Shown here one piece after another: positions 1-36,100 of a DNA stretch of 64,000 nt. A program made the position numbers and the translations under genes. The stretch comes from Chara braunii (taxonomy: Eukaryota; Plantae; Charophyceae), in contig BFEA01000010.1 in assembly GCA_003427395.1 (NCBI GenBank), positions 4,029,169 to 4,093,168 of the forward strand. The letters run 5' to 3'. The notes under the pieces are model-generated. The model had not been told where the DNA came from. It saw only the letters and a program-made list of their open reading frames with translations, and made no database searches. The stretch's first letter is position 1, and each line of letters opens with the position of its first letter.

Positions 1-48
1 CATTCTTGAATTTTCAGCTAACCGATAACCGCTTGTGAACTTACAGGG

Positions 49-1646: not shown

Positions 1647-1927
1647 AGAAAATCCAGAAAAATGTCTAGAGCCGATCTCATTTTGATCTAAAAAGTGACG
1701 GAGAGGTCGACTCGAATATTTAAAAACGTAGTAGGGGTACTACTTAAGGGCACATAAACTAGAGGGCTAGTGAGTGTCAGTTGGTGAGAAAGAGAAGATA
1801 GAAAGTCATGGAAAGGAAGCTAGAACTGTAGGTACAGGGAGCCTTGAATAACATCTTGGGGAAAAAGGAAAAAACCTAAGAAAGGAAAAATAAGACGGTC
1901 AAAGGTAACCTGAAAAATCCATCCTTT

Positions 1928-4048
1928 TTGCCGTGCAAAATAGATTTACTGGAAATTGCGGAAAAAATGAGAGACACTAATGGGACAGGAGGACAAGGGT
2001 CCATAACTGCGGCTGAGATCACGCGATTACTGGATAATAGAAGTGTCAAGAGGTCTCAACTACCCCGGATAGAAATTTTTCCCTTACAAGGAGAACGGAT
2101 GTCGCACTGGCTTGAGTTGTTGCAGCAAGTCTTCAATCGACTAACACCGGCGGAAAAATTCGCCCAACTGTTTGAATATGTGTGGTGGGAGTTTCGCCCC
2201 GAGATTGAAAAGATTGTGGCTGATGCGGAAGGGGATTGGAACAACTTCAAGAAAGAAATGCAGAGAAAGTACAAGCTGGGAGATGGGTTATTGACGATCG
2301 ATCAATTTCATAACGTCAACATGAATGATTTCACTACAATAGGAGCGTTTGCAACAATCTTCGAGAAAATGGCGGAACGAGTTCCAAGACTTTCCGAGGA
2401 GATTCAGTGTGTCATCTTTCTGGGAAAATTATCGGGCTATGAGACTATGGAATTGACCCGGGGAGGAGCACCGGGAAGAAAGACGTAAAGAGAAACGATA
2501 AAAAGAAACTTGGCATCTGGGGACTTGGACCAGGTGTTCCATCACTAAGTAAAGATGAAAAGGAAGAGAAGAAAGGGCATAGGTGTCATCCAAGGGGCCG
2601 ACTCTGCCCTAGGAGGGGTACTGAGCAGTATGGTAACTCAACTGAAAGAGTTGAAGGATAAGGTGAAATCAGGGAAGGTGATGATAGTCGGACAAACAAC
2701 GAATAAAATGAGGTATGAAGGAAAGGATGAAGGGAATAAAGAAGGGAAGAAAACTGAACCAGCAGTACAGTCTAAGAAGGTCCAAAAGCAGAACCAAAAC
2801 CAGGCATCAAGGAAGCAAGGTGCAGGAAAAGGGCAGAAATCGCAGCAAACGGTGACACCAAATGTCCCAGAAGCACCAGCCCCGACACCTCAATTTCGGC
2901 CTTGGCCGGTGGTAGCTCCTATGGGAGCTGGGCCTGGCTACTACCCCGGGAATCAGTGGCCGGGTTTCGGTCAAATTGGGATATATCCAAATTTGCCCCA
3001 AGTTCAGGGAGTTGGGGCAGGACCATCACAAGGCCGAGGAGGAGATGGGGGTCAGCCGCAACATGCTTTGCACCACAAGGTAATCAAGGTCAAAATCAAT
3101 TTCAGGGGCAGGGGCATGGATAGGGACATGGTAAGGGTAGAAATGGAGGACAAGGAAATGGTCACGGAGGAAGAGGATTCGGAGGAAGAAGAAATGGCGG
3201 ACAAGGAGGAAATTGGGGAAATCAAGAAGGTGCTCAGTCTTGATATTAGAGTCAGGTGAGCTTTAATCAGATCGGATATGGGTACAACCAAGGCCATGGT
3301 CAAGGGTATGGTCAAGGATATAACCAGAACTATGGTAGGGGGTTTAGAAGAAATGACGGGCAATGGAGCCGTAAAGGGATCGGGAGAGGCTGGATAGATT
3401 ACGACGAGTGCATATGTACGCATTGCACGATAAAAGGATATACTGTGAAAATTTGTCATGTTAGGAAGATGGATGAACAGGACGGAGTAATCACATTTAA
3501 CATAAATGGAGATATATTCGATAAGCAAGGAGTTGAGAGTCACTTTGGCTGCAGGATCAGAAGCAACCTACCAAACTCTTAGAAACTTTGTCCCGCATAC
3601 TGCAGGAAAACCTAAAGGGGGAAATGCGCCCAAGGAACCAACCCAGACTCATGTACAACCTCAAGGGGGAACTTCTATTGATATAGAGGAAGAGGAGGAG
3701 GATCATGATGAATTACTTAGGGGGGAAGAGGACAAACACCCTGAACAGAAGGCTAAGAAGCGAAAACATGATATTAAGGAAGGAAAGGAGAAGGCTGGGG
3801 AGAAGTCGAAGAAAAGATGGAGGTACCAGACGTCGATTGAAGAAGGGGTAGACCTAAAAAATCTGGTAAACAAGCTTCTTGATGGACATAACGAATTGTT
3901 GAATCTGAAGGAGATTTTGGCAACCGTATTGAAGCTCAGAGAGTTAGTAAAAACGAAGTTGGCACGAAATAGAGTAGCGACAGTGAGATTGGGGGATCTG
4001 ATTCCCAAAGAGGTGAACTGGACAATAACCGGAAGCAAGATGGAGTGA
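1928..4048 (+). pseudogene. Gypsy gag (fragmented)
   Basis: W..FKKEMQRKY capsid-like helix, Gly/Gln-rich linker, and degenerate zinc knuckle CTHCTIKGYTVKIC (~3415-3456). Confidence 0.8.
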
Positions 4049-4054
4049 AAGTCT

Positions 4055-4400
4055 GTGGGAACATGGTCCATTAATGTCAATATTAAACGGAAAGGATGCC
4101 CTGGGACGGTGGATAAAGGAGCAGAAATGAACACTATGAACTCTGAAACAGCTGAAAGGCTAGGACTTGAAATTGACAAGAGAGATTGCGGGTATCTCAA
4201 TAGGGCTAGTAGAAAATCAGGATACACTGGTATTGCATCAAATGTCGTCGTGGAAATAAGAAGTGTTAGAGTCCATTCCTGGTTCTAGATCATGCCAAAC
4301 CTGAATCTTCCCATATTACTAGGAAGGTCCTTCTTATCACGATCAGAAGCCCCCATCATGAACAAGCATGATGATACTATGTTCGTGATCCTATGTGACC
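4055..4400 (+). pseudogene. Retropepsin aspartic protease (fragmented)
   Basis: VDKGAEMNTM catalytic-like motif and ILLGRSFL motif, with a stop at 4286-4288. Confidence 0.8.
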
Positions 4401-5063
4401 CTGCCTGTGGAAACTTCGAGGTCATTACCTATAAAAATACAGGGCCCCATAGCTCGAAGAACCGGCTCAATGCTGAGTCATATACTTTTGAGGAATCTGA
4501 AAATAGCAGAAAATAATTAGAATGGGGATCTGATGAGGAAGATGAGAAAGAAAAAAGTGAAGGATTAACATTAAGTCTGGCCAACATAGACCAAGCAATG
4601 TACATGGTATCCGCTTATGATATGGCAGGACCTGAGGCAATTCGGGCATTGGCTGACAAACTGTATGATTATCCTGAAGGAGGAAGGATGAAATTGGCAT
4701 ACATGCCATCCTCTCGAGAGGAGAAAATGCAAGGACCGTATGCCCAGGCTTGCGGCCAACATTTTTTCAGGGGTAGGCCGAACCAAAGGGGGAAAATGAG
4801 GTACAAGATGGTAGACAAAAAAACCACCCAGTTCCAGTTTTAGTAACGCATGAAGAAGGGGTGTATTATGAGCAAGAGAGAGAATTGATAAGGCAAATGA
4901 GAGAGAAATGGGGAGCAACGTCCTGCCGTATTAACAAAGAGACTGAGAAAGACTTGATCATTGAAGAACCCGAGTTTTTGACTAAACAAGAAAAGACGTT
5001 AGTGATCGATTTAGTGAAGGAAAACACTGGGCCTATGCCTTCAACGATGAGCAGAGAGGAAGG

Positions 5064-5990
5064 TTGGATGTGGACAAGATAGGGATGATCCGGATCCACG
5101 CAGTCCCACATCAACCTTGGAATATTAAAGGAGTCAGATACCCAAATCTCGATGATCAGAGAAGGGTGGTGGAATACCTTGATGGAAAGATTGACTCTCA
5201 CGTAGCAGGGTTTTCTAGCGGACCTTATACCTCACCGTGGTTCTGCTTCATCAAGCCGAATGGAGTACTCAGGTGGGTGCAAGATTTACAAAGGTTGAAC
5301 GTCGTGACGGTTAGGGATGCTGGAGGATTTCCCAACGCTGATCAACTCTCTGAAGCATGTGCAGGAAGATCGATTATCTCGTTCATGGACATGTACTCGG
5401 GTTACGACCAGTTTCCAGTGTATCCAGTCGATAGACCGATGAGTGCGATGCACACTCAAAGTGGACTAATTCACATGAACGTGGCACCCCAAGGATGGAC
5501 AAATGCTGTAGCCATGGTGCAAAGAAGTATGGTGAGAGTTATGCAGCCAATCAGTCCGCTGATTACTGAACTCTACATTGATGATTTTGCTGTAAAAAGT
5601 CCGATGGTGAAAGATGAGCAAGAGGTTGTACCTGGCATAAGGAAGTTTGTTTGGGATCATGTCAATGATTTCAGAAAGATGCTTGATTTGTTACAAGAAT
5701 ACAACCTCACGACGAGCGGAGCTAAGTCCAGGCACTGCATGAGAGAGACCAATATTTTGGGGTTTGTATGCAATGAGCAAGGTCGTCGTCCTGACACCAG
5801 GAAAACGAATAAGATCCTTGAATGACCTACGCCGTTCAGGAACGTCAGCGAAGTAAGGTGTTTTCTTGGAACATGTGGATTTTGGATAATTTTCATCGAA
5901 AGGTTTGCTGCTAAGACTGAACATGTGAGGAAGTTGGTAAGAAAGAATCAGGAATGAGAATGGGGAGAGAAGCAGGAACAAGTGGTGAAA
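5064..5990 (+). pseudogene. Gypsy reverse transcriptase, truncated
   Basis: SPWF..KPNG.LRWVQDLQRLN, DMYSGYDQ, PQGWTNA and YIDD motifs; stops after 5823. Confidence 0.95.
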
Positions 5991-7959: not shown

Positions 7960-8154
7960 TCTCTCTTCTTCTTCTATGTCGATGTCCTCCTCCTAGTCGC
8001 CGTCGACCTCCCCTCCCCTCCGATCGCTCGCTTCCATTAAGGCAATCAGGTGTTCATAGGCTCATAGCGATGTTGCTTTTTGATCCCTCGACGTCACTCT
8101 TCCTATCACTGTCGAGCAGAATCCACCAAAGTGTTGATGAATATCATATCAATT

Positions 8155-8205
<51 letters not shown>

Positions 8206-9043
8206 TTAACCAATCAATCTATCAACCAATCAATCAGTCAGGATCTCGTTGAATCGATTGGTTCGATAGGATCTTGATCAAGATCCTATCGAACCAATCG
8301 ATTCGACGGGATCCCGACTGATTGATTGATTGATTTGATTGGTTGATTGTATTGATTGTATTGATCGATTGATTGATTCATTGATCGATTCATTGATTGA
8401 TTCATTGATTGATTCATTGACTAAGTTGGAAAAAAAAAAAACGTTGGGGGGGTCGAGGTCACCTCGCGATGATGTTGGCGGTTATGCCCGCTCCCCATCG
8501 TAGTCGCCCTCCTCTTCTTCTTCTACCTCGATGTCCGCCTCCTAGTCCTCGTCGACCTCCTCCTCCATATCGTCCTCGTCGTCGCCCTCCTCCTCCTTCT
8601 TCTCCTCCTCCTCGTCCTTGTCCTCTTCTTCTTCCTCTTCCCTATCGTCCTTCTCCTTCTCCTCATCCTCGTCCTCGTCGTCGTCATCCTCCACCTCATT
8701 ACCCTCCTCCTACTCCTCCCCCTCCTCAGACTCCTCCTCCTCAGGCTCCTCAGGCTCCTCTGGCNNNNNNNNNNNNNNNNNNNNNNNNNNNNNNNNNNNN
8801 NNNNNNNNNNNNNNNNNNNNNNNNNNNNNNNNNNNNNNNNNNNNNNNNNNNNNNNCCCCCCCTCTTCTTCTTCTACGTCGATGCCCTCCTCCTAGTCGCT
8901 GTCGACCTCCCTTCCCCTCCGGTCGCTCGCTTCCCTTGTGGCACTCAGGCATTCATAGCGACATTGTTTTTTTATCCCTCGACGCCGCACTTCCTATCAC
9001 TGTCGAGCAGAATCCACCAAAGTGTTGATGAACATCATACCAA

Positions 9044-9082
<39 letters not shown>

Positions 9083-9368
9083 ATCAACCAATCAATCAAT
9101 CAATCAATAAATTAATCAATACAATCAACCAATCAATCTATCAATCAATCAATCAGTTGGGATCCGGTCGAATCGATTGGTTCGATAGGACCTTGATCAA
9201 TATCCTATCAAACCAATCGATTCGACGAGATCCCGACTGATCGATTGATTGATAGATTGATCGATTGGTTCGATAGGATCTTGATCAAGATCCTATCGAA
9301 CCAATTGATTCGATGGGATCCCGACTGATTGATTGATTGATAGATTGATTGGTTGATTTGATTGATTA

Positions 9369-9413
<45 letters not shown>

Positions 9414-9790
9414 CCGAGTTGGAAAAAAACAAACGTTGGGGGGGTCGAGGTCACCTCGAGGTGATGTTGGCGGTTCTGTCCGCGCCCCATTGTCGCCGCC
9501 CTCCTCCTCTTCTTCGTCTACCTCGATGTCCTCCTCCTAGTCCTCGTCGACCTCCTCCTCCATATCGTCCTCGTCGTCCTCTTCCTCGTCCTTCTTCTCC
9601 TCCTCCTCATTCTCGTCCCCTTCTTCTTCCTCTTCCCCATCCTCCTTGTCCTCCTCCCCCTCCTCTTCTTACTCATCTTCCTCGTCCTCGTCGTCGTCAT
9701 CCTCAGCCTCATTACCCTCCTCCTACTCCTCCTCCTCCCCTAACTCCTCCTCAGGCTCCTCCTCCTCCCCCCCCCCTCCTCCCCCCCTCT
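7960..9790. repeat. ~900-bp tandem duplication of a (CCT)n / (AATC)n-palindrome-(GATT)n / (CCT)n module
   Basis: 7960-8760 is repeated at 8856-9790. Contains a 54-bp perfect palindrome at 8251-8304, with related copies at ~9170-9225 and ~9262-9312. Confidence 0.85.
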
Positions 9791-9839
9791 TTTGCCACGA
9801 CAGGTTCCCCTACTTGCACCTACAACGTGCGCAAGACTA

Positions 9840-11320
9840 ACGGGTCTTCAAAGGCTGTCGTGAACAATGTTGGGGTGCACGGGGCAGAGTAGAGGGTGCA
9901 GGATAGCATAGGTGATAGGTCAGCTCAGGCAACGGACCGAAGGCCACAACACAGGGACAACGTGGAACAGGTGGCATATCAGCATGCAAAGTGTCTGGGG
10001 GTTAGACATACCATCGTGCAGACGGTGGATGAGGTAGTACAGGACTTGCCGGGCCAGAGGGTTGAACAGAGGGTTGATCATAGCGCACATCGGAGATTGG
10101 ACGAGAGAGCACATCCGCCGGACAGGGAGGGCATTCCTCTCATGGTCGTGTAGACTGCAGAGCAGCGTGTGGGGGTGGGTTTGGCTGCGACTGTGGAGCA
10201 GAGGGCGAAGCAAAGGGTACATCCATGTGTTGCCTTAGGTGCAGATCCTAGGGTGGAGCAGAGGGTGGAGCAGAGGGTGGAGCAGAAGGTCGAAGTTAGG
10301 GTGGATGTTGCTGTGGAGCACCACATGGACCAAGGGAGATCAGACATCGTATGCGAGAGAGTGGGCGAGAGGATTGACGAGAGTGTCGTCGGAGATGAGG
10401 GCGGTGTGATGGTGTAGGAGAGGATAGAGGATAGGGATAGGGAACCCCCGCAGGAGAGTAGTGTGCGAGACATCTCACTCACCGGAACTTCGTTCTACGG
10501 GATTCCCCCGCTACCCCCACGTGTTGCACAGTCCTCTCAGGGGGTGGATCTTGGTGTACGTGGCATGTCGCCACCACGTCGCGTGGCAGATCAGGGGCGA
10601 ACATCTAGAGGAGTTATGGGTGGTGTCGACCACGACTCCAGACAGGCGACGCAGGGAGAGGAACGCAACTTGTTATTGACGAGTCGCATACCCTCAACCA
10701 GTCCAGCAGGCATACCGCCTCGGCCCGGACTTGGAACCATCCATTCACCCCACTTATCCACGCTCAGCAGAGGCTCTAGTCTTCCCATGTCACTACGGTC
10801 GTCGTCGTCCAGGACGATTTGCACGCCCATGCGCAGTCCACTGGGGATGCCCCCACTTCCCGCACGACGACCATCAGCCATCTGCGATAATGTCAAGACG
10901 AGTCGTGCCGGCAAAGAAAGAGAAAGAGGGAGGACGACGGAGGTGAGGATCCACCCCTAAGGCGCCCCAGAGCAGGCACCAGTCGACCACGTGGCCGCCC
11001 ACGTGGCTCGTGTAGAGGACGAGGCAAGTAACAACAATCATGGGCACTGAGTGCACTGGGGGATGCTCATGCAGAGACTGTTGACCTTGAGGAAGGGGTT
11101 GCTACAGGCGGAGGTATCTAAGGGGGTATCCATACCAAATTGTGAGCCGCTGGCAGAGAGAGGCAGAAAACCTTTTCTCGCATGGTGAACGATGATCCTG
11201 ATGGTGATGATCAGGGCAACACATCGGATGAGATGTCCGACAGCGACTACGTGGACGAGACTCATCAGAGGGGTCAGGCTGAGGGAGAAGAGGAAGTGGA
11301 TGCAATGTGCATTTGGTGAG
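9840..11320 (+). pseudogene. Decayed low-complexity reading frame inside the hAT element (possible transposase C-terminal tail)
   Basis: ORFs starting at 9896, 10169 and 10463 share one frame separated by single TAG stops; EQRV repeats; acidic end. No catalytic motif recognised. Confidence 0.4.
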
Positions 11321-12100
11321 CGGGAGTGGAGCGTTGGTTGCAGCCACAGAGAGAGAGAGATTTTGTTGGTGTACTTTATTTGTTGCACTGGTAGTGCATT
11401 GCTTCTGTTTCTGTCCCATTCCGTCGACGAGCTTGAATCCGCATCAGCAATCTGCAACTTTGTTCAACGAATGTGTTTGTCAATATAGCTCGTGTGCATG
11501 TGTGTTTATTTCTGTGTGCGGTTGGCTGCTGGTGTGGGTGTGTTTTTGTGGGTGTGGGTGGGTGTACAGAGTGGGTGTGTGTGTTTGCCTGTAGATATTC
11601 TTTGTGTGTGTGACTGTGTGTATGTGTGCTCACTTGTGTGTCACTGTGTGCGTTTGTGCGTGGATATAATGTGTGTGCGTGTGTGTGCGTGTGTGTGTGT
11701 CTGTGTGTGTGCACGGATGACGGTATCACTGCAGCTGCTGCATCTGCCGCAGCGGATTGTCCACACGCTGCGTCAAACGAAGCAGCTGCAGTCACCGCAT
11801 GTGCAGCAATTGTTGACTGCAGCAGCAAACCCTCCATTTCAATCCCCCAAGCAATACATCCCCCCCCCAACACCCCACCATCACACCTCACACACCGTAT
11901 CATTTTTTTTTTCCGTTTTTGCTCAGAACAACATTAAATTTTTGGGGGGTATGCAGACCCCCCCCCATTTTTTTTTTCCGTTTTTTTTTTGGCAAAAAAA
12001 CACATTGTCCAATTTTCCGAACAACTCCCCCCTGACCGTCTCCCAGAGACGTCCGGGGGAAACGTCTCCCAATCGGATAGCTGGTCGCCTAGGAAATAAC

Positions 12101-12480
12101 TCTTAACTTCACAAGACAAAAAAATAATGTACGAAAAATGTCTTTCCAACATGTATACAAAGCTAAGTACAAAATCTAGAAATACACAAAGAAATTTTTT
12201 TGTCTAACTCTTTTATTTAGTAAAAAATTGGACAAGATCTCCTTTGGAGAAGTAGGCTTTTCAAATTTATACTAATTCATTTATGAACTCAGACAAAAGT
12301 TAAACTTCGTAAAGACAAAATTTGACTAACTTTTTGCATTTGCATAAATTTTGGCAACACTTCCTTTAGCGAAAGTGTCTCTTCAAGATTTATACAAAGC
12401 CAAGTATGAAAAATAAACTTAACTAAGAAAATGTAAAAATTGAACCAACTCATATATCTCCGGCACGTGGCGAGCATCTA
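12101..12480. repeat. AT-rich dispersed repeat, homologous in the opposite orientation to 44470-44800
   Basis: The reverse complement of 12200-12270 aligns with 44550-44622. A 25-bp direct repeat AAGCTAAGTACAAAATCTAGAAATA occurs at ~7175 and ~12160. Confidence 0.65.
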
Positions 12481-12921
12481 AAACAACTACCTATCAAAGT
12501 TGAGACTCATAACAATTAGGGTCTACATTCAACCACATGCAAATCCATACCACAATGGGTAAGTACTCTCGCAAAAAATCCAAAGTGTTTCTCACATAAA
12601 TATTTTATTTACTTCCAGTTTGACAAACCCCAACACCTTTCCTTACATATGGTATAAGAAGGTTTAAACCGCTAGCACACGATCCCGGCCTTGCAAAAAG
12701 TTTTTGTCACCACAATCAAAACTCGAAGGCGTCGCGCGGCCATGAGCGTCGTTGAAAAAAAACAGTGGCAGCCTCCGAAGTGGTGCGTGTTTCATGCTGA
12801 CACTCGCGGATTAATGTGTGGTGTACTTGTGTTTTTAGCCAAATATAAGTCATATTGCTTAACCTTTGTCTTTGTATACACAAGCAGAGGACACAACTTC
12901 TTCTTTGTTCATTAGGCAATC

Positions 12922-13697
12922 AATTAGACTAAACTAAAGTCACATTGTCTAGTTATGACAAGTGTTTAATATCCAAGTTATAATATTTTTTCGAACTTTT
13001 AATCTTTTGAAGACTAAGGTTAGTCCAAACTGAAGCCACATTCCTCAATCCGCCTTTGGTTACATTTATTATATTATTAATTAGGTATTTTTTCCCCTTT
13101 TATAATAAGTTGTAGTCAAACCAAACTGAAGTCACATTGTTTGACGAGCTTTGTTTAATAATAAAAATATAATATATTTATATATAAATTCGTATGTTCA
13201 GATTCTATTAATGTGCGCGACCTCAGACTAAGCCAAACTGAAGCCACATTGCTTAGTCATCAGTCCAAACCTCCCTCAGAAAAACAAGTAGTTGGGTCTG
13301 ACCAAAGCTACATTACCCAACTTTTAAACCATTTTAACAGGAAGATCGTCACAAGAACAGCAACCAGACCTGACCGAAGCCACATTGTCTGGTTCGGGTA
13401 AGGAATAAAACAACATAGCATAGTCGGTTAGGCCAAATCAAACTACATTGCCTAATTGCACATATAACAACTTACAGAGGTATGACAATCAGACATGACC
13501 AAAGCCACATTGTTTGATAACCACAGAAACTAAACATTACAACAGTCGGGTCTGACCGAAACCAGATTATCCGACTGCAAAGAAGGTGAATTAACAAATA
13601 TTACAACAACTAGACATGTCCAAAGTCACATCGTCTAGTTGCATAGGAAACAGAATAAACAAAGTGGTCAGGCCAAACCGAAGTCACATTGCCAGAC
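12922..13697. repeat. Array of 11 hairpins: variable 7-9 bp stems, conserved ~17-nt loop, unique spacers
   Basis: Units at 12922, 13018 (decayed), 13115, 13226, 13290, 13362, 13425, 13488, 13543, 13607 and 13667. Loop consensus approx. (C/A)(A/T)(A/G)AC(C/T)(A/G)AAG(C/T)CACATT. Confidence 0.9.
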
Positions 13698-15070
13698 TCT
13701 CTGAAGACCCAATCATTGCAGGTGAAACTACCTTTTTCCCAACTTCCCCCAATTCATCCCCGTTTGAATTTCAAGCAACAAATGCAAAGTAAGATTCACA
13801 CAACTTTTTATTATTTTTTAATATGATTAAGCTCCATAAAAAATCAGTAAACATCAGGTTGCATGCATACATTTCAATCAAACTAGAGAGGTGTAATAAA
13901 TAGGGGTGTAGTGGGTTCACACAAGGCAAGGAAGGTACACCTGACAACCCTGCCTCCATAACTTCTCTTGGGTTCCGACAGAGTTCCCATAATCGGTGGG
14001 TGGACCTCCCACAAGGTCTCACTGCGAACCTATGGGTTGCAATCTCACCTGCCACCTTCCTCTCCGAACCAGAGATCAGACTTAGAGTAAGAAGGATAAA
14101 AGAAAGGGTTCCAAACTCTCGAGATACAGGAAGGGGACAACTCATCTCGCGCGAGAGGGTCTTGGTATCTTGATGCGCCTGAGGGTCCCGTAATTGTGGC
14201 CAAACCTGCGGTAGGATGACTAAAATGCAGCCAAACGCAGAGTCAACGACGCTCTGACAGTCTTCAAGGTCGCAGCAATAACCCCCCCTTGTAAAGCCTG
14301 ATCACCCCTCCAAGACCACAACGCTTCCTCCCCTGATGAAATTGTAGTTTCACAACCTAAAAAGGGCTCCATTCAAATAGAGCACACCCCGTGTGCTCAA
14401 TTTCAATACAGGTTGTAACAGTCTAGTAAGGTAAGAAAAACAACACCAACTTCAGTCAAACACATTGTGCCTTCCAGTAAGGCGCAGCACAAGACACGAT
14501 AGTAGTGTACAACGCAAAACGTAATAAGTCACATCGCCACACAACCAAAGCTCAGCGATGCACAATGCAAAACACAACAACAGAGCATCGTGCACTGCAA
14601 TGCACAGCGTGCATAGTGAAGTATGGCAGGCAGCACGACAAGAACCCAACAAAAAACACCGTAAGTGCACAACGCTGCTCAACAACCGTTTTTCAAAAAA
14701 AAGAAGGATAACATAAGTGGCTCTTGACCCTGAAGATTAATGAACAATTACAACTATGGCAACAACCAAACAATTTGAGCATCACTTAGCCGCAATCTCT
14801 GACTTCCACAGTAGCAACAACCCTTAGCATCAGTTTTACTGAAGGTACAACCCGTCTGATAACATTCCCGATTCCTTGAGGAAACCAGCAGCAATCCGGC
14901 CGCTGCCAAAACTAACAGCTCCTCTGCTGCTCCCAAAAGCAGTCGATGATACCTTTAAGATCAGATCGCAGCCCACCTCAACCACCAATACCATTCTTTC
15001 ATTACAAGGCAACCTTGCCGTTGGGGTAAACAACAACACTTGAATACTCAGGACTAGTTGTTGCTGAGAG

Positions 15071-15333
15071 CTATGTTGCACGGTGGCCTCGACCTGGTTC
15101 GGCCCAGGCCGCGGCCGGGCCGGCCGAGAACTTTCGGCCGATGCCGCGGCGAATTGGGGAGGGGGGTTGGGGGGCGGGGAACGGGTCTCGAGTCGGGGGG
15201 GCGGGCCCTACCTCCTCACAAAAAAAAAAACATAAAAACTTCGAAAACGGGGGGGTGGATTTCGAAGACTACCAAAAATAAATAAATAAATAGAAAACAA
15301 AAAAAAAATCGTTGATTGACTGTTTTTTTATTT

Positions 15334-15393
<60 letters not shown>

Positions 15394-15472
15394 GTGGGGG
15401 AGGGGTCCTCCCTCCACTCCACGGCGCGCGCACACCTCTCTCTCTCTCTCGCGCGCGTGCGCGTGCACACCT

Positions 15473-15525
<53 letters not shown>

Positions 15526-15857
15526 TTTCTTTCGCCGAAGTTGCGCAGGCGGGACCCCGCGCAACTTCGGCACAAGTAAGTGAGCGTGTGTGTGAGTGTG
15601 TGTGTGCATGTGTGTGTGTGTGTGTTTGTGTGTGATTGAGTGGGGGTTGGGGTGGCGACCCATCCCCCACCAATCAATCAATCAATCAATTAATCAATCC
15701 AAAGAAAAAAAAAAGTAAAAACAAAAAACAAGAAAAGCGGGTTTTTTCGTTTTTGTTTTTTACTTTTTTTTTCTCTTTTGATTGATTGATTGATTGATTG
15801 GTGGGGGATGGGTCGCCCCCCCAACCCCCACCCAATCACACACACACACACATACAC

Positions 15858-15890
<33 letters not shown>

Positions 15891-16165
15891 TCCTTGCACG
15901 GGGTTTCGAAGAGTTTTTTTTTTTCTTTTTCTTTTTTTATTTTTTGTTACGCAATCGAAAACAATAATGCCCCCCAAAAAATATGGGCGTGTAGGGTTTT
16001 TTTAGCCCTACATGCCCAATTTTTTTTTTCATGCGTTAAAAAAAAAATAAAAAAATCCTGCACGCAACTCGGCTGGTCGGCCTCGGCCGAACCGAGCCGA
16101 TTCGGCCATCGGTCGAGGCCGCGGCCGATTTGGACCCCCTGGCTGCGGTCGGGCGTGCAACATAG
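15071..16165. mobile_element. Non-autonomous hAT-type element (1.1 kb)
   Basis: Perfect 12-bp TIR CTATGTTGCACG/CGTGCAACATAG; 8-bp TSD GCTGAGAG at 15063-15070 and 16166-16173; CGGCCG subterminal repeats; microsatellite interior. Confidence 0.93.
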
Positions 16166-18399
16166 GCTGAGAGACAACAAGCCCGCTCAGGGACTGTTGT
16201 ATCAATCTTGATATAAGAGCAAGGCCCACCTCTGAAAACTGCAGCACCACCACCACTCATCACCTCGATGATTAATCTGAACAACAACATGGCTTCGATA
16301 ATGGTCACACAAGGAGATGACCACGATCAACTTAATCACCACTTGTAAGACCTTGATGATGGCAACTTGGATGAAGGTGACCATAGCGACCGTCGAATTG
16401 AAGGCGATCACAACAACGAGGCCGGATGTGACAAAAAATCGGAACGGCCAAAGCAAAGACAGCTTTGGTGAGCCTGATGATGAACAACAGAACCTAGGTC
16501 ACAGTAACGCACTCTCCACTCGGATCTCGACAGGCGCCAACAAGGAGACAACTTGCTCCAACAGGAAGTCAAAATGACGGGCACTGCCAAGGTCGAGACA
16601 ACGGTCCTCATGGGCGCGACAGATGGACCTCGCTCCGCTACTCATCAAATATGCAAAATGAGAATGGATCTTCCGCTAGAACATGGGAAGATACATTGCC
16701 AACTAATCGGTCTGCTGTTTTGCCCAGTGGCTCCACCTGCCAAGTGCAAAATGAGAATAAATTTTTCGCTAGAACATAGAAAGATATATACGAGTTGAGT
16801 CTCTCTCTTCCTCTCTCTTCCCTTCACATAACTCAGCCTGCTACTCTACTTACTCTGCATCAGTGACAAACATGACCACAATCAACGATGATCAAATGGA
16901 GGCAAACGACTGGTATGACCGTGGCTGAAGACGAGGAGCCCAATGGTGAGCACGACAATAAGCAGCGTGGTCACAAAAGTCACGATAGCGGCCACTATTA
17001 GAATCAGAAGGAAGGTCACCCCGACTGGTGCGCACGCACCATCGGGAACAGGACTAAGGTCGAGACGACCATTCGGGGATCCGCACGGGGATCAAGGCAA
17101 ACCCAAAAGCGAGCACTTACTAAAAACGAACATGATCGCAATGATTAGATGGTCAGGATGAACACGATCGGCCCCTGCCATATCCACTCTCTCGCTCATG
17201 TCCTTCACACTTAGTATTCCCTCTTCTACTTACCACTCTTCCTATCTCTGCTTTTCCAGTTTTCACTTCCCCATTTTCTTGGCTCTCCCTATCTCACTGC
17301 TTTTTCTCTCTATGTATCCAGCCAGCACCACCGGAGCAAGATGAGTAGAGCAACATGACGATGATTAGAAATACGGCCCGCATCGAAACGGTGAACAATC
17401 ATTACTTCCTCCAGGACCTTGGCGACGAGCGGCGTGGTAATCAGGGACGGCAGGGCAGTCTCCACTTCATCTGATGTGCAAAATGAGAATAAATCTTCCC
17501 CTAGAAAGTGGGAAGATATATTGCCACAATATAGTTGCTCAGCATCTGCCGCTCGAACCGAACAAATTGTTGCTCAGATCACAATTTTGACGAGGCCAAT
17601 GTGTTCAGAATGATCTGAAAACCCCATTTAGTATCTTTGTTTGCAAAAATGGATTGAGAAACAGCTGAGTAAAATCAATCTTCACTCCCATTCACTCTTT
17701 TCTTACCTCCTCGACCTTTCCCACGCACCTATTACTCTTCTAACACATCTCATACTAAATCTCCTCCCAATCTGACTACAGATTCGGGATTGCCCATCCC
17801 GAACCCCCCGACTTATCATTCCTCCTTGCCTAGACCCGTCAAGGGATGAGCACGGTTCGTGTTTCTTGCTTCGTCACGTTCACCTTCGCCATCCACACTC
17901 TCTTGTTGACGTCTCCTCATATTCCCCCTTCCGCTAGCCCAATCTTTTTTTTTTTTTTTTTTTTTTAACTCACTGTCTCATATTTCAAATGAAGGAATAC
18001 GAGGCCGAAAACCTCACCATTCAACCCGGAGTTATCCCGGCAGCATCAACCGGTTTAGCTTATCCCAATCAACTTGCCACACATCTACTTAATGCATTCT
18101 TTGTAATCAACAACAAAAAGAAACCAAAACTTCCTTAAACCCAAACGCCTAATTGAGCCTAAGAGTCTCCTTGCTATCCTATCCTAATCTACTTACCTAC
18201 TCCAGGTAGACCCTTACCTATATACAGACCTACGACCGGTCTGGTACCCAGCCCAAAGCGGTCGGGAGGAACCTTGTTCCATTCCCAACCCCTGACACTC
18301 TCCCTCCCTCCCCCCTATGCAGTCTACTGTGACTGCCCACAGGAACCGAGTGCACCTGGTTCATCCATAGCATCCTTCCTAACCTACTGTTTCTCAACC

Positions 18400-21300
18400 C
18401 AACTCCCCAGTACCAATTTCCCTTCCGGAGACACGTGGGCCAAGCCCAGGCCCTAGGTCCGTTGGAACCATGTCACACCCTTGTTGCGGTCCAGTTAAAA
18501 CGTCCTTCTCGTCCAGTCTGCTCTGATAGCTGTGGCAAGAAGGCTTTTAAAAAGTTCTTCTGCCTGTTTCTCTGGCAAACTCTCCCCCTGAAATTTGAGA
18601 ATGTTCCTGTCAGCCCAAATGACCCAAAACATAATTGCCCTGCCCACCTGGGCTACATAACTCCAACCCTCCGTGCCACTGCAACTCTGAGGTAGGCAAC
18701 CTGCAAAAACCCACCTCTGCCCTGTCAACTTCATCCTCCCTGCAAACCTTTTCCAATGATAATCCCACCACCTCCACCATTTTCGTGACCCTGGCCAATC
18801 CACCAGAGATGTTGCATTGTCTCTGGTGCCTCTTTACACTGTCGCACGTTACCTCTACTCCCATCCCTTTGTCTGTCAGCCACTTAGAGGTAGGTACCGC
18901 TAGATGTGACTGTAGCCACAGTAAGGACGCTAACTTCTGTGACTGAATGGTTTGAAGTTGTGTCCAGAGCTTGGTGAACTCAGATTGCGAAAGCGGATCC
19001 AAATCAGGAACTTGTCTTTCCCACCGACTGCTAACCTTCTCGCAAACTGATACTGAGTCTGATTTCTTTTGGAGGATCAGACTGGCATCTAACTGTTCTA
19101 GCCCCTTAACGACCGAGTCCCCTATCTGCCAGCCCCAGGCTTCGGAGCCAATTCTCAATTCCTCCAACTCAATCCCATTTCCTACCAACACAGAAATTGG
19201 TTGGAAACCCTCCTCCTTCGGAAGTCTCAATCTGACCCTGATCTCTTTCAATCCCACCAGCCCATATTGAGTCCTTATCCCAACTTTTTCCAACGTAGGG
19301 AGATTAGGAAGCGCCCGTTTGTATGTTTCAAGCCAACACTTAACAGACTGATTTTTAGTCCAACTCTCCAATCTGCAAAACCGATCCAGCTCGTCAGAGG
19401 CAGACACAAACCAAGTACCTAGTGGGTCAACCCCTCCTGGTCCAGGTCCCAGTAGCTGCTCCCATTCTTCTGGAATGGCCTGTAAGAGTTGCGCCAGCCG
19501 CCGCTCCTGATTAGGCAGCTGGCCCAAGGAATCCCTCAATTGTGCAGGAGATTTCCACATGTTGCTATTGTCATCCCACAAATCCCCAATCATGCTGATG
19601 CCCTTCTGTACCCAGCTCTGTCCGAAGTTACCAGGTCTCATCTCCAATGAGAACCAGGTTCCTTCTAAGGCCCTAATTCGGTTATTCGCAAAGAGGTGTT
19701 GGCGCTTAATTTCCATCTTGGACTTCGGGGCAATACACAGCGTAGGTCTGCATTTTCGCCATGCTTGCAGGATGTCATTCCAAAGACGGGACTTTGGTCG
19801 CCTCCTGGCATATGTATCCGCCATCAAGGCGATCCAGACATCCGATGGTCGGGAAAAGCGCTATTCCTTTGCCAACAGGGTTTCCGCCAGCAGGACCCAA
19901 TCCGTATTCGTTTCCACTTTTGCCACCCTCACCACCCATTTGGCTAGCAGTGCCGTGTTCTGTGCCGCTGGGTCAATCAGCGCCGATCCTCCCTCGTTGC
20001 GTGGTCTGCACAGCATGTCCCACGCCACTTTACTTATATACCCATTCTCCACGTTCCTATCTGGTTTCTTGATGAATCTTCGAGCAACCCCTTTGACCAC
20101 CTTGAGCATTGGGTTTGAAAATCTCCGGACTATTGCCACATACCAAAGCAGGGCAAACGCAGATGCCATGATCGCTAACACCCTCCCCACAAGTGACAGG
20201 TGAAAGGCAGGCCCCCAACTCTTTACTCTCGTACAGACTTTCTCTTGAAGGATCGGCTCCTGTGACGCCGAGCAGTTCCCCAGGGCTATTTGAACACCAA
20301 GGAACCGTTCCGCTTGGTCCACTTGTACTCTCTCCATTCCCCACTGAACTGCTAGTGTAAGAGATGTTGGAAGAAAAATGTTGACTTTCTCCAGTTCACT
20401 GCAACTTCAGATAGGTCTGTAAAGTCTGACAGGCAACTCTTCAATGCCTCCAATGAGTGCACCTGGTTTACAGATAGGACAAACAAATCGTCCGCCAGAG
20501 CTTTGACCCAAGCCTCACCCCCTCCACTTACGGCAAGACCTTTGATCTCCGGATGTTTCCGTATATTGCAAAGAAGAGGTTCAAGGTGGAGTACAAAGAG
20601 GAGGGGCGCCAAGGGGCAACCTTGACGCAATGACCTTGTTAGAGCGAATTCCTTGGAGACTTCACCGTTCACACACACGGCAGCAGACACGTGCCCATAC
20701 ATCGCCTTCACCCATCTGCAAAAGGATTCCCCGAAGCCGAAAAAACGCAGAGTAGTTATCACAAAGGTCCAATTCACACTGTCGTNCGCCTTTTCGAGGT
20801 CAAGTAAGAGAACCGCCATATTCCTGTCCTCGTTTTCGATGAGCTTCAAAGCCTCGATAGTTGTAACGATGTTCTCGAATATAGATCTACCTCGTACAAA
20901 AGCTCCCTGGTCTCGTGCCACTAATCCACGCAGATAGTTTCCAAGTCTGATCGCTAGCAGCTTTGCAAGCAACTTGTAAACTACATTGAGTAGAGAAATG
21001 GGTCATCAGTTTTTAATGTCACTCCGGTCTCCCTTTTTGAACATGAGAGAGATGATACCCCTTGTCATAGCCGAACCTAGCCTACCACCTTCTCTAATCT
21101 CATTGAACATTCCCACCAGGTCTTTCACCAAAACGCCCCAACATGCACTGAAAAACTCCACTGGCAGCCCATCCTCACTTGGCGCTTTGACCCTGGCCAT
21201 GCTCCTGAGGGTGGTTGTGAGCTCCTCCTCCGTAACAGGCCGGTCCAGCAGAAACCTTCCTTCCTCTGATAGTCTGCATTCCACTTTGTCCCAGACAGTT

Positions 21301-22616
21301 GACTCAGCTGTCATGTCATCATCCAGATCGTCAAGTAATCGCCTCGTGGTCATGATGTCATGGAAGTAGGTTGCTGCATATTTGCACATATTACTGTTCA
21401 AGGAAGCGATTGGCAAGCCTGGCAAGTGGGGGTGTTTGAGTTCCCTCATTTGAACTGCTGTGTTTCTTGGTAGGAGCCTCCTGAAAGCCTCCTTGGACAG
21501 TCTGTCTGCCGCAACAATCCCTTTCACTTCCAATATCTTCACTCTCCATTCCTGTTGACCAACCTAGTACTCCTCCCATTCCCGAAGCCTCGTCTGTCTT
21601 TCCTCTGCCCAGAAAAGGTCTGAGATCGGGTTCTCCCCCAACCTCTGCCCCGCTTCCTTCACTCTTCCTTCCAGGCAAGCCGCCTCCTTGTTGCGAAGAA
21701 AGGCTGCAATTTTTGAGAAGGAATCCAGCTTGAGGGAGATGATATGGAGTCCTGCATCCACCCATTCTGTTGAGGTAGTAAACGAGGTCTTTGCTGCATT
21801 CCAATCCGACCAGAAACCTTTCACCCATGAGGTTATCCCCTCATCTAAAAGCAACGCCGTGTTTAATCGAAAGTAGCCTGACCCTCTGTCTCCCACCGCT
21901 GCTACAATACATTTCATCACCACTGGCTTGTGGTCAGACAGAGGAGTGTTTTGTGTCTCCATACTCTAAAACACCGCCTCCGATACCAGGAAAAAATCTA
22001 TCCTCCTTCTGACCCTTGCAAGTCTGGGGGTTTGGGCAAACCATGTGCATCCTGGCTCAATCGGGTACAGTTCCCTATATATGTCCTGGAGCTTCCAATG
22101 TTCCATCCACCTTAGCAGCTTGGCTCTGTCAGCAGTCATGCCTTTCGGGGCCTCCGAGTCCAGCCCTGGACTGCATGTTATGTTCCAATCTCCACCAATT
22201 ACCAGTCGTTCACTACTTGGGAGGACATGCGGGAGTGTGTCAAAAAAGACTGCCCGACCGCCCGATTCGTTAGGAGCATAAATCGTAGCAAATACCCATT
22301 CCTCTCCTCCAATAGACAGCCTTACCCAACACCATCGACCCCATACGTCGCTGTCAAAGTCCACAAGTTAGGCTTCTATTCGTTTGTGTAGTAAGATGGC
22401 AACTCGTCTTTTGTTCCCCTAGCAGGAGACCAAACTTGGGGTCCGTCCCACCAATCGTTGAGCTGAGCTAACTTGAGTTTTGACAGCTTCGTTTCCTGAA
22501 GCATAATCACATCCAATCGTTCTTGATGTATCCAGGCTTTAACTTTTTTCCCCTTTCGGCGCCCAACACCTACCCCCAACCCCCTAACATTCCTTAGCTA
22601 TCCTGAGCCTACCCAT
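18400..22616 (-). pseudogene. LINE ORF2: APE endonuclease - RT - C-terminal zinc motif (fragmented)
   Basis: LQETK, IYAPN, GGDWN, RRIDFFL and SDHKPV (endonuclease); QGAFV.GR, LLDLEKA.D, LRQGCPLAPLLF and LADD (RT). Confidence 0.95.
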
Positions 22617-22762
22617 GAGATGGCAGAGGACTGACTGCAGATTGGATTCCTGCTGATGAAGGGTTCACGGCACGCTCGCCTTCCGGAGCATCTGATTCAT
22701 CCATGGCCGCCCAATCAATGCTTATACAGCGAAAGAAGGGGCTGGACATCAAGTTGCACGAT

Positions 22763-24839
22763 CTAGGCATACTGGATGCAAGTTTGCCAGAAGGTGGCCG
22801 AAACGCCTGGACTTACCACTACTTGGGACAAGATTTTCTCTGACGCTTGGACAAGAGCATCCACCAGAAAGGAACCTAAGCCCACTCTACGCAGACATGC
22901 CCATTCTTCGGAAGAGAAGCGAGCATTAATAAGCACCACAGTATACCGAATCATGCGGTCATCTTCCAGCACAACTCTAATCTTTGGCATGTGAAACTCC
23001 GAGAAGATTCGGGACTGCAGCCTGTCTGCAAAGAGGTATCTTACCCGATCAGTTATCAGAGTCGACGTAAGAACTCCCGATATACCGATGGCAGGCAATG
23101 AGAGGGCCTCGTTGTCACCCAACAACCCTACTACATGGACTTCCTGGCCCTGAAGTGAACATACTAATGGCAACAACATCTATTCCTCCAGGTCATTCAA
23201 TCCTCGACATTGTAACTCTGCACCATCAGGGACCGCGCCCCCATGGACCAGTTGATCCTGCCCTGGTAGTGGCGCCCTCGGTATTCTGCCAACTTCTTCA
23301 CTTTCATCCTTCGATTTTTCTACAACCTCTTCCACCTGCGTAGCTTGCTGTTCCTATGGTGTTGGCAGCTGGTCTTCTGGAGCCGGTGCTGGTGCCCCAT
23401 TCCTGCCACCTCTCGACCCCCCCTGTTCTTGTGAGTTCCTCCTGATGTTGCCCTCCGTGTAGATTCCCCCGTAGTTGAGCATCTGGGCAAAATCATATGG
23501 AAACTGGAGGTACGGATTCATTCATGCTCCATTGAAACCGTAAGGTTGATGGCTTAGCCCCTGCCACTGTATCGGCCCCCACCCTGGAGCAAAGTGTCGG
23601 AAGTCGGGGCTGAAGATGGCTGTTGTGTTGAGTGAAGGGGTTGAGGTTGCGGTCTTCTAATGATCATCGGGGGCCTGGCCCTATCGACAAGGATTTGCAA
23701 TTCTCCTGCTCCCCTAAGTACTCCTGGTACTTGCCCCACGATTAGCGATTCGCTCCTAGCAGCTCTCGCTTGATTATCCACTCGTGCCCCGACTGGTTCC
23801 TGAATGGCCCGGCTCCCGGTCCTACTAGCAGATGTAGCAGATCGAGCTTGTCCAGCTCTGCCACTTTGCGCCCACTTGGTCCCTTGCCGCGGCCCGTATA
23901 TGTCGATTATCTTCAGGTCAGTCCACTCTCTCTAACCCTCCCTCCCTTCTCCTTGTTCGTTGTTCCCCTTGTTCTGCTTCCTGATCGCCCTCTTAGGGGC
24001 ACCCGTCATCTGCAGTATGGTACCACCACTTACATTTGCCACACCAAGGGTTGTGCTTACAAACAAACTTGATGCTTAGCACTTTGTTTCCCAGTCGGAT
24101 TGACAGCCCCGGCTCAAAGCTTGGCCTCCGCCTCCTTCACCAGTTCGAACTTCAAATTCATTAGCTTAGGTCTCGACCGGTCTTGCTCCGGTGGTTGACT
24201 ATTAATCATGTGTCCCATTGCTGACTCCACCATGCTCTCCACATGAAACATGGCCCTCAGAGGAACTTTGATCGCCATTACCCAGAACTTCGTTTGATCC
24301 TCCAGCTGTCTTCTGTCGTCCAATTCTGTACGAGTAAGCCATGGTTTAAAAAGCATGTCATACTCAATACCCCTTATCGTCACCATGTCCTCCGCTTTTG
24401 CAATTAACCATTGAGCAACTTCTCAGGAGCGGGCTACATATGATACTACATTTGGCCCTTTTGCATGCACCCTGCCCCATTTGACATTTCGGTCAAAGAT
24501 TCCCTGCCTATACCAACCATTCTCATGCGCTCTAATCAAATCCTCTCTCACTCATATCGGGAGATCTTGTGCTTCTCCTTGAAAAATTATAGTAACAGTC
24601 CTCTCCTTCGACCAGTTCGTAGTAAACTCGTCCAATCTTGTGTTGACCACGAAGGTGCGAACTCCCCGTTCGACTCCCCACTCTCTATGTCGAAACTTCT
24701 CGGGCAGAATTCCATCGTCGTAGCACTTAGCAATGAGCAGTTTCATTTGGTCTTCATCTGAGAGCAGAACGTCCGTGTGTGCTGGAGGCGAGCGTCCCCT
24801 GCTCCTCTGTTGACTACCTGAGGCATTTGGAGCTGACAT
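22763..24839 (-). pseudogene. LINE ORF1 (fragmented) with zinc knuckle and extra C-terminal globular segment
   Basis: LFKPW and FWVMAIKVPL motifs typical of plant L1 ORF1; WCGKCKWWYHTADDGC knuckle at ~24000-24046; 138-aa segment at 22763-23179. Confidence 0.75.
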
Positions 24840-25509
24840 GTTACCAACAGCGTAACCCTAATCCCTCTCTTTTTCCCTCAGACCCTCCTTCCCTCGGTAT
24901 CTCCCTTTAACCCTCGGAGGTTCCCTTTTAGCAACGGCTCAAACAGTTGTATAGGACGGGAATTTCCCCTATGCTTGTTTGGTGGAACAGCAGAGTTTCG
25001 TAACCATAGCCTCAACCCTGCTCTTCGTACAACCGCATCAAAGGCGGGCGCCCTCCCGGCGCTCGCCCAATATAGACAAAACGAAGCTTGCACGCCTATA
25101 GATACAGTTGAAATTCCACACACCTATGCATGGTTGCATGCAGCCATAACTTCACACCTGTGAAATCATAGTTACCAAGGAAGGCAGCCTTTCGCTCACC
25201 CTTCGCTGAAGAGGCCCAGAGAATGCCGAGCACGACAAACAAATTCACTAACGACGTAATAATAACGACCTCAGTGATGGTTGCGCCAGTACTACCTGGT
25301 TGTACGGTTTAGAGCGCGTGGCGCCAACTGCCGTACCCCCACAGGCCTTGAGTCCGCTGGAAGCGTCAATTCTGCCGCCAGATCCGATTCTGCCGCTACC
25401 AGAAATAGCGCAACAGAGCATTAGTGCAAAATTAGCGCTCCCAGAGGACTCGCGGCCGCTAGAATCCCTCTAGCCCAGTCTGAACCGGCCTACTTTCTAA
25501 CTGGTAACT

Positions 25510-25625
25510 AAAAAAAAAAAAAGGAATATAAAGGGCAGGCCCAAGCATATACGTGTTGTCCCATGAATACGGGTCATGTTAATCTTCCATGTATCGTTCC
25601 GATTTTAATGGGTGACCCGAAGGAC
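25510..25625 (-). ncRNA. U6 snRNA-like sequence (variant or pseudogene)
   Basis: The minus strand reads GTCCTTCGGG..TAAAATCGGAACGATACATGGAAGATTAACATGACCC..GGACAACACG, then T13. Canonical U6 reads TAAAATTGGAACGATACAGAGAAGATTAGCATGGCCC..GGATGACACG. Confidence 0.85.
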
Positions 25626-25697
25626 TCGGATGGGGCGAAGCCCCGTGGACCTTCCAGGCAGCAAAGCGCCCCAGGAAAATCAGGAATTCCATTCATC

Positions 25698-33194: not shown

Positions 33195-36100
33195 TGTCGT
33201 GCGCGGCAGTCCCGCGCCCTGAAGGGGAGCGTTGAACCTCACGGTCGTGTCACGCAGGATGTTTTGTCTGAAAAGAATCCGTCACCACTCCGACCGTGCG
33301 CGTGTGCTATACCTCTCACGACGCCCTGCGACAGGTCGGGACGTCGCGAGGTACAACTTCCCTCTACCCAAGGGGCTTTCACCACCTTTAGGTAGGCGTA
33401 TCCCTGCTGAGCTACCGACCCACGTGCGAAGGCTTTTACATGCCAACGTAGAGGTAGGTCGGTCGAGGGTGTTTGCTCGATTGTTGTAGCACAAAATAGG
33501 TTACGCGAGGTAAGACGCCTACAACCGACCCGTTAGATATCCAGGTCGAACTTTCAGACGTTTGTCTATTCCCGCTTCTACTTCCAAAACATATTATTCT
33601 ACTAGCCACTATGATCAAAGTATCAATCAAACCATATCACTACCAAGGACATTCTATTCTACTTGACATATGACTGAACATCAGATTGTATAGAAGTTAT
33701 ATAGGACTGATAATGAATATAGAGGTGTTACCGCTGAGAACCCTTTCGACTTTCACAAGTGCTATGTGTCCAAGACTCTTCAACAGATCAGGTACAGTTC
33801 AATCCCCAAAACACGCACAAAACAGACATGCACAAAACATGCAAGGACAGTTCACATGCCATGCACTAATGGTGTCAACCATCAATCCACACCTCAGACG
33901 TTGTCCCTCACGTCCCAAACCATGTATGACAGCTCTATCTTTCCTTAGATGTAAGTCAACCCCCGTACATTTCTTCAAAGGACCCTTGAGAGTGACCAGA
34001 ACCATTTAGGCAATGACCACAGGTGACAGTTTAAGTTGAATCGGCAACGACCGACCTATTATCGAGAGATAACAGAAAATTGACCCCTTTATGTAGGACT
34101 TCTCCTTCAATTGCAGTAGATTAAAACAGAGACCTGCACACACACAGGTCAACAAAGATTCAACACCCCCACTTGATTTCCCACTTATTGATATCTAAGG
34201 GTCAAACCCTTAAATCTGGTCTGTGAGCTTTGGGATCAACAACCCAAAGTCTACTAACCGCTTAGCTTCTACCTACCCTATGTCGTCTGTCACTCTTCCT
34301 CATTTTGTTCAAGGAGTCTCTTGTCTATGTCCTAAGTTGTCTTAGGAAACTCCTATTTCCTCTACTATCCGTCCTCGCATTTTCTCTCTTGTAGATAAGC
34401 ACTCCCTTTGGTGCTTACGCGGTAATCTAGCTGAGATCAACTCATGTCATTGGCGGTTTCTCCCTTAGGAGTCTTTTAATGAACTGAGTCTACGAGGAGC
34501 TTCTTCTTTTCTAATTCTTTTTCCCCGCGGTACTTGCCCTTTTATTCGGCTACTTTTAGGACACCTGGAGTCACTCCCACTTAAGCACTCTTTTGTCCTT
34601 TCTCTTCTTCTTGTCCTGACATACGCAAGTAGCGGGTTGACTCACCCGGGAATCTTCCACTTCTTGATCAATTCCAGACAGTCGATTAGTCAAAGAAGTA
34701 GTCGAATAGCCCCACGGGAGCACTCAACCATTCTTCAAAGTCCATACAGTCATTATGCAATCAATTATCTCACACAATCTTATACGGGTGACCGGATAAC
34801 TCATATGAAAGTATCCTTTTATTAGTTAAGCAGGTAGTTCGGAGGTCCTGGTCGAACCATCTCAACACTTGACTCAACTTTCAGAAAAACACTCCAGATC
34901 TAGGTGTCAGTACGGAATTCAAGTTAGTAATAGGCGGTCTTCACAGAAGCCTCTTATTACTCCTTGATTAAAACCCAGCCTATCCTCAAAAGGTGTAATA
35001 AGATGACCTCACGGAAGTCACCCTACTACTTCCTCAGAGTCGAACGAGCTAGGATTATGTTAACGACCTCAGGCAAACACCAGATCCTCCCTTTGCTGGA
35101 GTATCTTATTAGACTTGTTAAGATAGAGTCAAGCAAGCAATAGGATGACCCTACGGGAGCCTCCCATTTCCTGCTTCAACGTTAAATAAATAGGTCTTTA
35201 ACATTTAGTCATACCCTCCATCAGTCATAGCCAAACAAGTAGTAGGATTACTCACCCTGGAGTCTCCCTCTACTGTCTAAAGACAATCACCTCATTCCTT
35301 TCCCCCGTTAGTTGATCCCCAGATCAAACAAGTATTATGATAACCCTCCCGGGAGTCACCCTACTACCAGTTTGATGTGTAGGAGATCAGTGGAAATGAC
35401 TCTTAGTTGAGTTGTCCTGATCGTTTATCTATCTTAACTATGTATTGTAAATGAGCAAAAGGTATGTCCACTCACACGGAAAGTCGGACAGATCATTCTA
35501 GACTTAGGAGTTTGTGTACTCACTAGGCGAGTACTTGATTCCTTTCAGAGTCTGGTCGGATCTGTGATAGGAGAGCCCCACGGGAGTCTCCTACTACCTT
35601 TGCTTTTATTAGTCGTTGAAGATATGTACCCCACGGGAGTACCGGATTAGTTCTTAGATCTAACCTGTAAGGTAATAAGAAAACTGCACGACAGCTTCCC
35701 GTTACCAACGTCGAATTCAGATAGGTACCCCTGCCAAACGTCAATTAGTCAGGAGGATGGCAGGGTAATTCGCACGACGAGTATCCTATCATCTGCCTTG
35801 GTCGTTCCATGCAGGCAGCGTGACCCCGTGGGGGCCTCCATCACATTGTCTTTGCTTCTTCAAAACCAAGCATACTAGGTTCCTTCTCGGTTCTTCCTAG
35901 GTTTCTTCCTTCCTTCAGGGAAGATTCTTACTTCAATCATATAATTCTTTCTCTTTTGATACGCTTAATTCTGAAGAAAACACGACCAATAGATCATGTA
36001 GTCATACATGCAATCCAATAGATGGTTGTAGCCTATAAGGGTATATGGAAAAGGAGTGAGTCATGCGTACCTTATGGTTCACTGCCTCCAGAGTTTCTCC

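Follow-up and report, generated by a model that had tools for sequence, protein, structure and literature searches.

The window analysed here is a stretch of 64,000 nt from the genome of the charophyte Chara braunii. It contains an array of hairpins about 870 nt long (12830..13700), which is read on the minus strand, this being the sense strand of the element in which it lies. The array consists of 11 hairpin units and a decayed twelfth, a dozen near-equivalent units with free spacers between them, each built as a stem of 7–9 bp around a conserved core of 16–17 nt. The units were found by anchoring on the conserved core. All 11 units listed in an earlier note on this DNA, made from the letters alone, were recovered in place, while the decayed unit u0 (12834..12862), which that note had overlooked, brings the count to 12.

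The first unit in the sense direction is u11 (13667..13697), with a 7 bp stem containing one mismatch and UUCG in its core. It is followed, all on the minus strand, by u10 (13607..13641; 9 bp stem), u9 (13543..13577; 9 bp stem and again UUCG in the core), u8 (13488..13518; 7 bp stem) and u7 (13426..13457), in which one base is missing so that the core is 16 nt long, just as had been described for an otherwise fixed core of 17 nt. Unit u6 (13362..13394; 8 bp stem) carries the best copy of the core, also with UUCG. Next come u5 (13290..13322) and u4 (13226..13258), both with 8 bp stems, u3 (13115..13145; 7 bp stem) and u2 (13018..13050), where the stem is decayed. The array closes with u1 (12922..12954; 8 bp stem) and u0, which are separated by a spacer at 12864..12918.

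Neither the core nor the hairpin recurs freely in the window. A degenerate core motif has eight matches within the array and a single one elsewhere in the 64 kb, against an expectation of 0.44 for the whole window, and a covariance model built from the units matched only these 12 places. The array is not an ordinary tandem repeat, since Tandem Repeats Finder calls no repeat over it and the likeness of the spacers to one another is no higher than that of shuffled sequence, while the cores are 73% identical in pairwise comparison. A simple tandem repeat or satellite was therefore ruled out, and the uniqueness claimed earlier for the spacers is confirmed in the sense that they cannot be aligned. 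On the sense strand the spacers are rich in U.

Judged from sequence comparison, a truncated long terminal repeat (LTR) contains the array within its 5' portion as an integral component; this LTR belongs to a Ty3/Gypsy-type retrotransposon lineage of Chara braunii. The 5' end of the LTR lies at approximately 14276..14288 (minus strand), where homology to a related locus of the same assembly (L123, see below) begins and the DNA depth falls from about 2000 to about 59. A run of G at 14282–14288 is a candidate polypurine tract, and a similar run precedes what acts as the 5' LTR in L123. Proceeding in the sense direction, the LTR contains a block of about 47 nt (13949..13995, minus strand) that is common to all six related LTRs compared, and a TATA-like motif (13897..13902, sense, minus strand) that is a putative promoter; L123 has a TATAAA no more than about 20 nt from the corresponding position. 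The array starts about 580 nt past the LTR 5' end, about 250 nt past the conserved block and about 170 nt past the TATA-like motif, and it occupies the LTR from 580 to 1450 nt. Downstream of it, conserved LTR sequence continues at 12660..12880 and again at 12371..12570 (both minus strand), the latter being homologous to L123 8595–8833.

The LTR in the window breaks off near 12100, short of its 3' end, and has no primer-binding site. No second direct copy of 12000–14400 is present in the window, no gag was found beside the array, and the pol genes (RNase H, integrase) are not beside this copy either. A stop-free frame of 176 codons (13774–14301, minus strand) spans the 5' portion of the LTR; it matches no Pfam family and lacks a real homologue, its sole protein match, a bacterial Big_12 repeat protein, being judged spurious. 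No homologues were found for an ORF of 124 amino acids in the conserved part of the LTR, and an exact look-up of a window ORF matched no record. A fragment of a Gypsy element at 1–5900 was considered as the carrier and rejected, its relative L120 having no LTR block. Elsewhere in the window, an insertion (15085–16170) is MITE-like, with inverted repeats at its ends and an interior that is palindromic and rich in microsatellites, three copies of a non-coding motif of about 50 nt lie to the right of the LTR (16645–16700, 16737–16790 and 17465–17520), and a LINE with endonuclease and reverse-transcriptase domains extends on the minus strand from 17945 to about 22400, its 3' end being marked by a T-run (17945–17967).

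The identity and direction of the carrier come from its relatives. A reverse-transcriptase ORF of the window has its nearest relatives in Chara braunii, in proteins of 65–78% identity whose genes lie in assembly GCA_003427395.1, and L123, in the same assembly, was reached through a Chara gag protein. Four parts of L123 correspond to the window, all in reverse orientation: a match of 262 nt to 13949–14206, an array of nine hairpins, the spacer at 12864–12918 and the segment at 12371–12570. In L123 the LTR start, the conserved block, the array, the downstream LTR segment, the primer-binding site, gag, RNase H and integrase follow each other in one direction, with the protein domains on the same strand (gag 10001–10723, RT_RNaseH 13581–14210, integrase 15771–17039). 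The repeat ends about 840 nt beyond the match to 12371–12570 and is followed by a primer-binding site of 13 nt. The same 13-nt site also follows the LTR of a sister family at locus L121. This order and single orientation place the window array within an LTR and identify the window minus strand as the element sense strand, in agreement with the earlier remark that the minus strand folds more neatly. They also give the array a recognisable carrier, in a Ty3/Gypsy lineage with an ATHILA-type primer-binding site. We discarded a model on the plus strand that took 12652 for the site of a TATA-like motif and expected a primer-binding site beyond 14277, since no primer-binding site follows and the orientation in L123 is the opposite one.

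A preprint identifies this 13-mer as the tRNA-Asp/Asn primer-binding site of ATHILA elements, a Ty3/Gypsy group of plants. In addition to this site, which is shared by L123 and L121, long LTRs and the order of gag, RNase H and integrase in L123 are as in ATHILA; the papers found on that lineage report no hairpin arrays. The carrier may thus belong to the ATHILA lineage, which is given here as a lead.

The repeat is very abundant. In contigs of a Chara braunii DNA run, in which single-copy sequence has a depth of about 12, the array has a depth of 100–900 and its flanks 8,000–24,000, with a sharp fall at about 14280; a high dispersed copy number with a sharp repeat end is seen (depth 2,000–24,000 versus ~12). 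The array thus sits inside a highly reiterated sequence, and conservation between copies is higher in its flanks than in the array itself. Contigs of other copies omit or duplicate array units.

RNA reads from other copies cover the flanks of the array, including the conserved and abundant segment just downstream of it (12660..12880). Mates at 12690–12740 favour one orientation by about 7 to 1, which corresponds to minus-strand RNA if the usual stranded protocol was used. Reads of another copy enter the homologue of u0, where they display a different and perfectly paired stem, and at 85% likeness hardly any RNA reads fall on the array itself. The RNA reads contain no splice joint that spans the array, nor do they show phased ends or an end pile-up on it, the libraries being poly(A) and not small RNA. 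A cluster of microRNA or small-RNA precursors was rejected, as the stems measure 7–9 bp versus about 20 bp or more and no end pile-up occurs in poly(A) RNA. The suggestion that the array is a polycistronic precursor cut at each hairpin is not borne out on the same grounds, namely the short stems and poly(A) RNA reads without phased ends. The segment at 12380–12580 is covered in one RNA run only (X6), with a mate orientation opposite to that of the neighbouring segment, which suggests that some copies are transcribed antisense or by read-through.

The outer stems support the view that selection has maintained a folded single strand. Measured among the paralogous units of this one old, truncated copy, 85% of the cells in the nine stem pairs are paired when read on the plus strand and 81% when read on the minus strand, compared with 70% in shuffles (none of 500 reaches the observed value) and 22–40% in slid registers. 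Cells altered on both sides number 28, where 11.7 are expected, and 12 of the 28 pairs of stem positions show all four combinations. The last result indicates repeated compensatory changes, for which a single duplication history is insufficient. The proposal that structure has been selected therefore stands. The stems do differ and remain self-complementary beyond both controls, as had been proposed, but they are not arbitrary: all derive from a single ancestral palindrome and differ from one another by transitions. To call them interchangeable overstates the case, since 42% of the combinations made by swapping arms between different units still give at least 7 of 8 pairs. Wobble-type mismatches in the outer stem favour the plus strand by 8 to 1, a count that was given little weight and taken as decay noise because in L123, where the sense strand is known, the numbers are about even between strands; a strand call from wobble counts was accordingly set aside as unreliable. 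Covariation in the L123 array itself is weak.

The inner part of the hairpin is less clear-cut. The earlier note had folded the core, on the minus strand, into a UUCG-type tetraloop. That strand is indeed the element sense strand, but UUCG occurs in the core of only 3 of the 12 units (u6, u9 and u11) and the fold has no covariation support: on the sense strand, 33 of the 36 cells of the three inner pairs are paired, shuffled columns do equally well, and inner-helix pairing is 79% versus 78% in shuffles. An inner helix of the UUCG type is therefore compatible with the sense strand, not demonstrated for it. Kink-turn and C/D-box readings of the core, compared by eye only, do not fit. Folding of the whole array gives z = -4.4 for the sense strand and z = -1.8 for the other, a strand comparison confounded by base composition, as a control region outside the array is likewise skewed.

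Hairpin arrays are a shared feature of these elements. In four related LTR families an array occupies the equivalent position, and the constant core is a different one in each. The block of about 47 nt is common to six LTRs, namely the two in the window and those of L123, L121, L124 and L125; it is nearly invariant and contains an inverted repeat (13949–13995 and 36082–36127 in the window, 7456–7502 in L123, 1348–1416 in L124). Its DNA depth is about 17,000–30,000, compared with ~12 for single-copy sequence, and it may be a core promoter or some other shared cis element. Downstream of the block, the array begins after about 250–270 nt in three of the four families and after about 400 nt in the L124 group.

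The second array of the window (34560..35860, minus strand) belongs to a sister LTR in the same orientation, with its block at 36082–36127 and its 3' end at about 33196, and is made of other hairpins. These are longer and rich in G-U pairs, and the minus strand folds far better (43 G-U pairs versus 4 A-C mismatches). The L124 group has three hairpin types within a period of 162 nt, and in L124 itself, a sister family, a pair of LTRs that are 96.8% identical over 2082 nt encloses the array. The three types alternate at this period in L121 (1964–2600), L124 (1790–2480) and L125 (~1730–2820); unit numbers in these three loci may be unreliable in the assembly because of assembly gaps in or beside each array.

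The constant part is 17 nt long in the window array and 19 nt in L123. A covariance model of the window units matched nothing in five other Chara loci, the closest relative having a different core. The two units that close the array are positional orthologues in the window and L123, u1 corresponding to the unit at L123 8382–8420 and u0 to that at 8475–8513. Between them, the spacer has about 80% identity with L123 8422–8477, while the cores that flank it differ, each being that of its own family. This spacer is thus more conserved between the two families than the cores that adjoin it, and it may be a separate functional site. Overall, the cores appear to change together within a family while the stems and most spacers drift. 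Conversion of whole units would not yield uniform cores on divergent stems, and this arrangement raises a problem of concerted evolution for which ordinary repeat conversion offers no solution.

No known family accounts for the array. The window has no match in Rfam at gathering thresholds or at permissive E-values, the sole hit below threshold being snR78 (21 bits, with 48 required), so the earlier failure to recognise a family is upheld. Searches of full texts turned up no account of such arrays, whether from Chara or from LTR retrotransposons. Among metagenome contigs, a DNA pattern of two cores gave chance hits only, and the decayed copy in the window also fails this pattern. Contig Ga0213868_10002395 (L020) has five matches to it, the last four spaced 144–180 nt apart, and is probably an unrelated repeat.

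Several known systems resemble the array in part. Closest in setting are the cis RNA elements of retroviruses and retrotransposons (packaging signals, RRE, RxRE, RcRE and the constitutive transport element), which likewise belong to the LTR or leader region of elements that replicate by reverse transcription, consist of several hairpins, bind several copies of one protein and are element-specific; the array resembles them in layout, and would do so in binding. They are, however, single compact folds of unlike hairpins, whereas the array is a series of near-equivalent units over ~870 nt, and it has no sequence or Rfam similarity to any of them. The Xist A-repeat and similar modules of long non-coding RNAs have a comparable layout, with short structured core copies, U-rich linkers and multivalent binding, but they are parts of host RNAs, their cores are conserved in sequence and not set on covarying stems, and they share no homology with the array. 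The logic of engineered MS2/PP7 arrays with varied stems is the same (a constant loop, varied stems and linkers, many copies in a row), although those are artificial and their loops unrelated, while the Chara array is natural. Like the array, CRISPR loci alternate partly palindromic repeats with unique spacers of similar length. The CRISPR-like spacing that had been remarked upon is nonetheless misleading: the Chara array lies in the LTR of a eukaryotic retrotransposon, the neighbouring ORFs are retroelement genes with no cas genes among them, and its repeats vary in their stems around constant loops. CRISPR spacers are acquired DNA, those of the array diverged linker sequence.

Three features bear on function. 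The compensating changes in the stems indicate that the array folds as a single strand; its place within the LTR, between the TATA-like motif and the primer-binding site, points to the RNA of the element; and a uniform, family-specific core indicates a sequence-specific partner that binds many times. The reading we favour, at about even confidence, is that the array is a multivalent, family-specific docking platform on the element RNA for Gag/nucleocapsid or another RNA-handling protein. The array would form part of the element's own RNA, probably of a long 5' leader if transcription starts at the putative promoter, and also of the 3' end if it lies in U3 or R. Each stem of 7–9 bp would change only by compensating substitutions and so present a constant core of 16–17 nt, with unstructured spacers evolving freely between the units. 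Every core would be a docking site for the same protein, the likeliest candidates being the Gag/nucleocapsid of the element and a host RNA-handling factor, and a family-specific core would let the RNA of each family be recognised among many co-resident relatives. A multivalent scaffold for protein binding or packaging had been among the candidates named in the earlier note, and it stays the best guess, as a putative one, on the strength of the stem covariation and the family-specific cores.

Other readings share part of this evidence. An RNA-level role other than packaging, in which a host protein uses the array for nuclear export of unspliced RNA, for translation or stability of the leader, or as a shield against silencing, is consistent with the same structural evidence and with the location in the LTR/leader region. 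Retroviral export elements such as HTLV RxRE and HERV-K RcRE also occur there. Such a role seems unlikely, since the RNA reads contain no splice joint across the array and family-specific cores fit a partner encoded by the element better than a shared host factor.

It is improbable that the array serves reverse transcription. An array in R or U5 would become part of the minus-strand strong-stop DNA, and its hairpins, in RNA as well as in cDNA, could then guide strand transfer or set its pace; its location downstream of the putative start site but upstream of the primer-binding site would suit this, as would wobble-type mismatches on both strands, which are expected if both must fold. Identical cores in a dozen units would, however, favour transfer out of register, and no known element has such an array for that purpose.

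Slightly less credible again is an array with no function at all, a decaying palindromic tandem repeat whose arms are kept complementary by quasi-palindrome template switching or by conversion between units. The descent of all stems from one ancestral palindrome by transitions only, and the loss and duplication of units in contigs of other copies, are what such a process could leave behind. It accords poorly with a stem length that is constant at 7–9 bp with sharp borders beside free spacers, with arrays at one conserved position in four LTR families, and with cores that are alike throughout one family yet unlike those of the next, orthologous units included. LTRs often contain tandem enhancer repeats, and a TATA-like motif is near the array, but a role in duplex DNA, as a row of transcription-factor sites with the core as binding site, fits worst and is very improbable because it leaves the stem covariation unexplained, a duplex site needing no complementary flanks.

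The docking platform may be carried one step further, as a tentative idea and a clearly less secure one than docking itself. Each Ty3/Gypsy family of Chara might possess a private barcode in its LTR, a constant core that co-evolves with the RNA-binding protein of the family so that, in a genome with so many relatives, each family would package or handle its own RNA alone. If so, the split of a family requires a joint change of the core in every unit, which is what the orthologous units of the window and L123 hint at. Little is known of how an LTR retrotransposon in a plant or alga chooses its own RNA, and a family-specific hairpin platform would make this choice directly accessible: if the docking reading is true, arrays would be swappable between families, and binding and packaging measurable. 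The arrays of Chara would then also be a rare natural counterpart of the stem-loop arrays engineered for RNA tagging.
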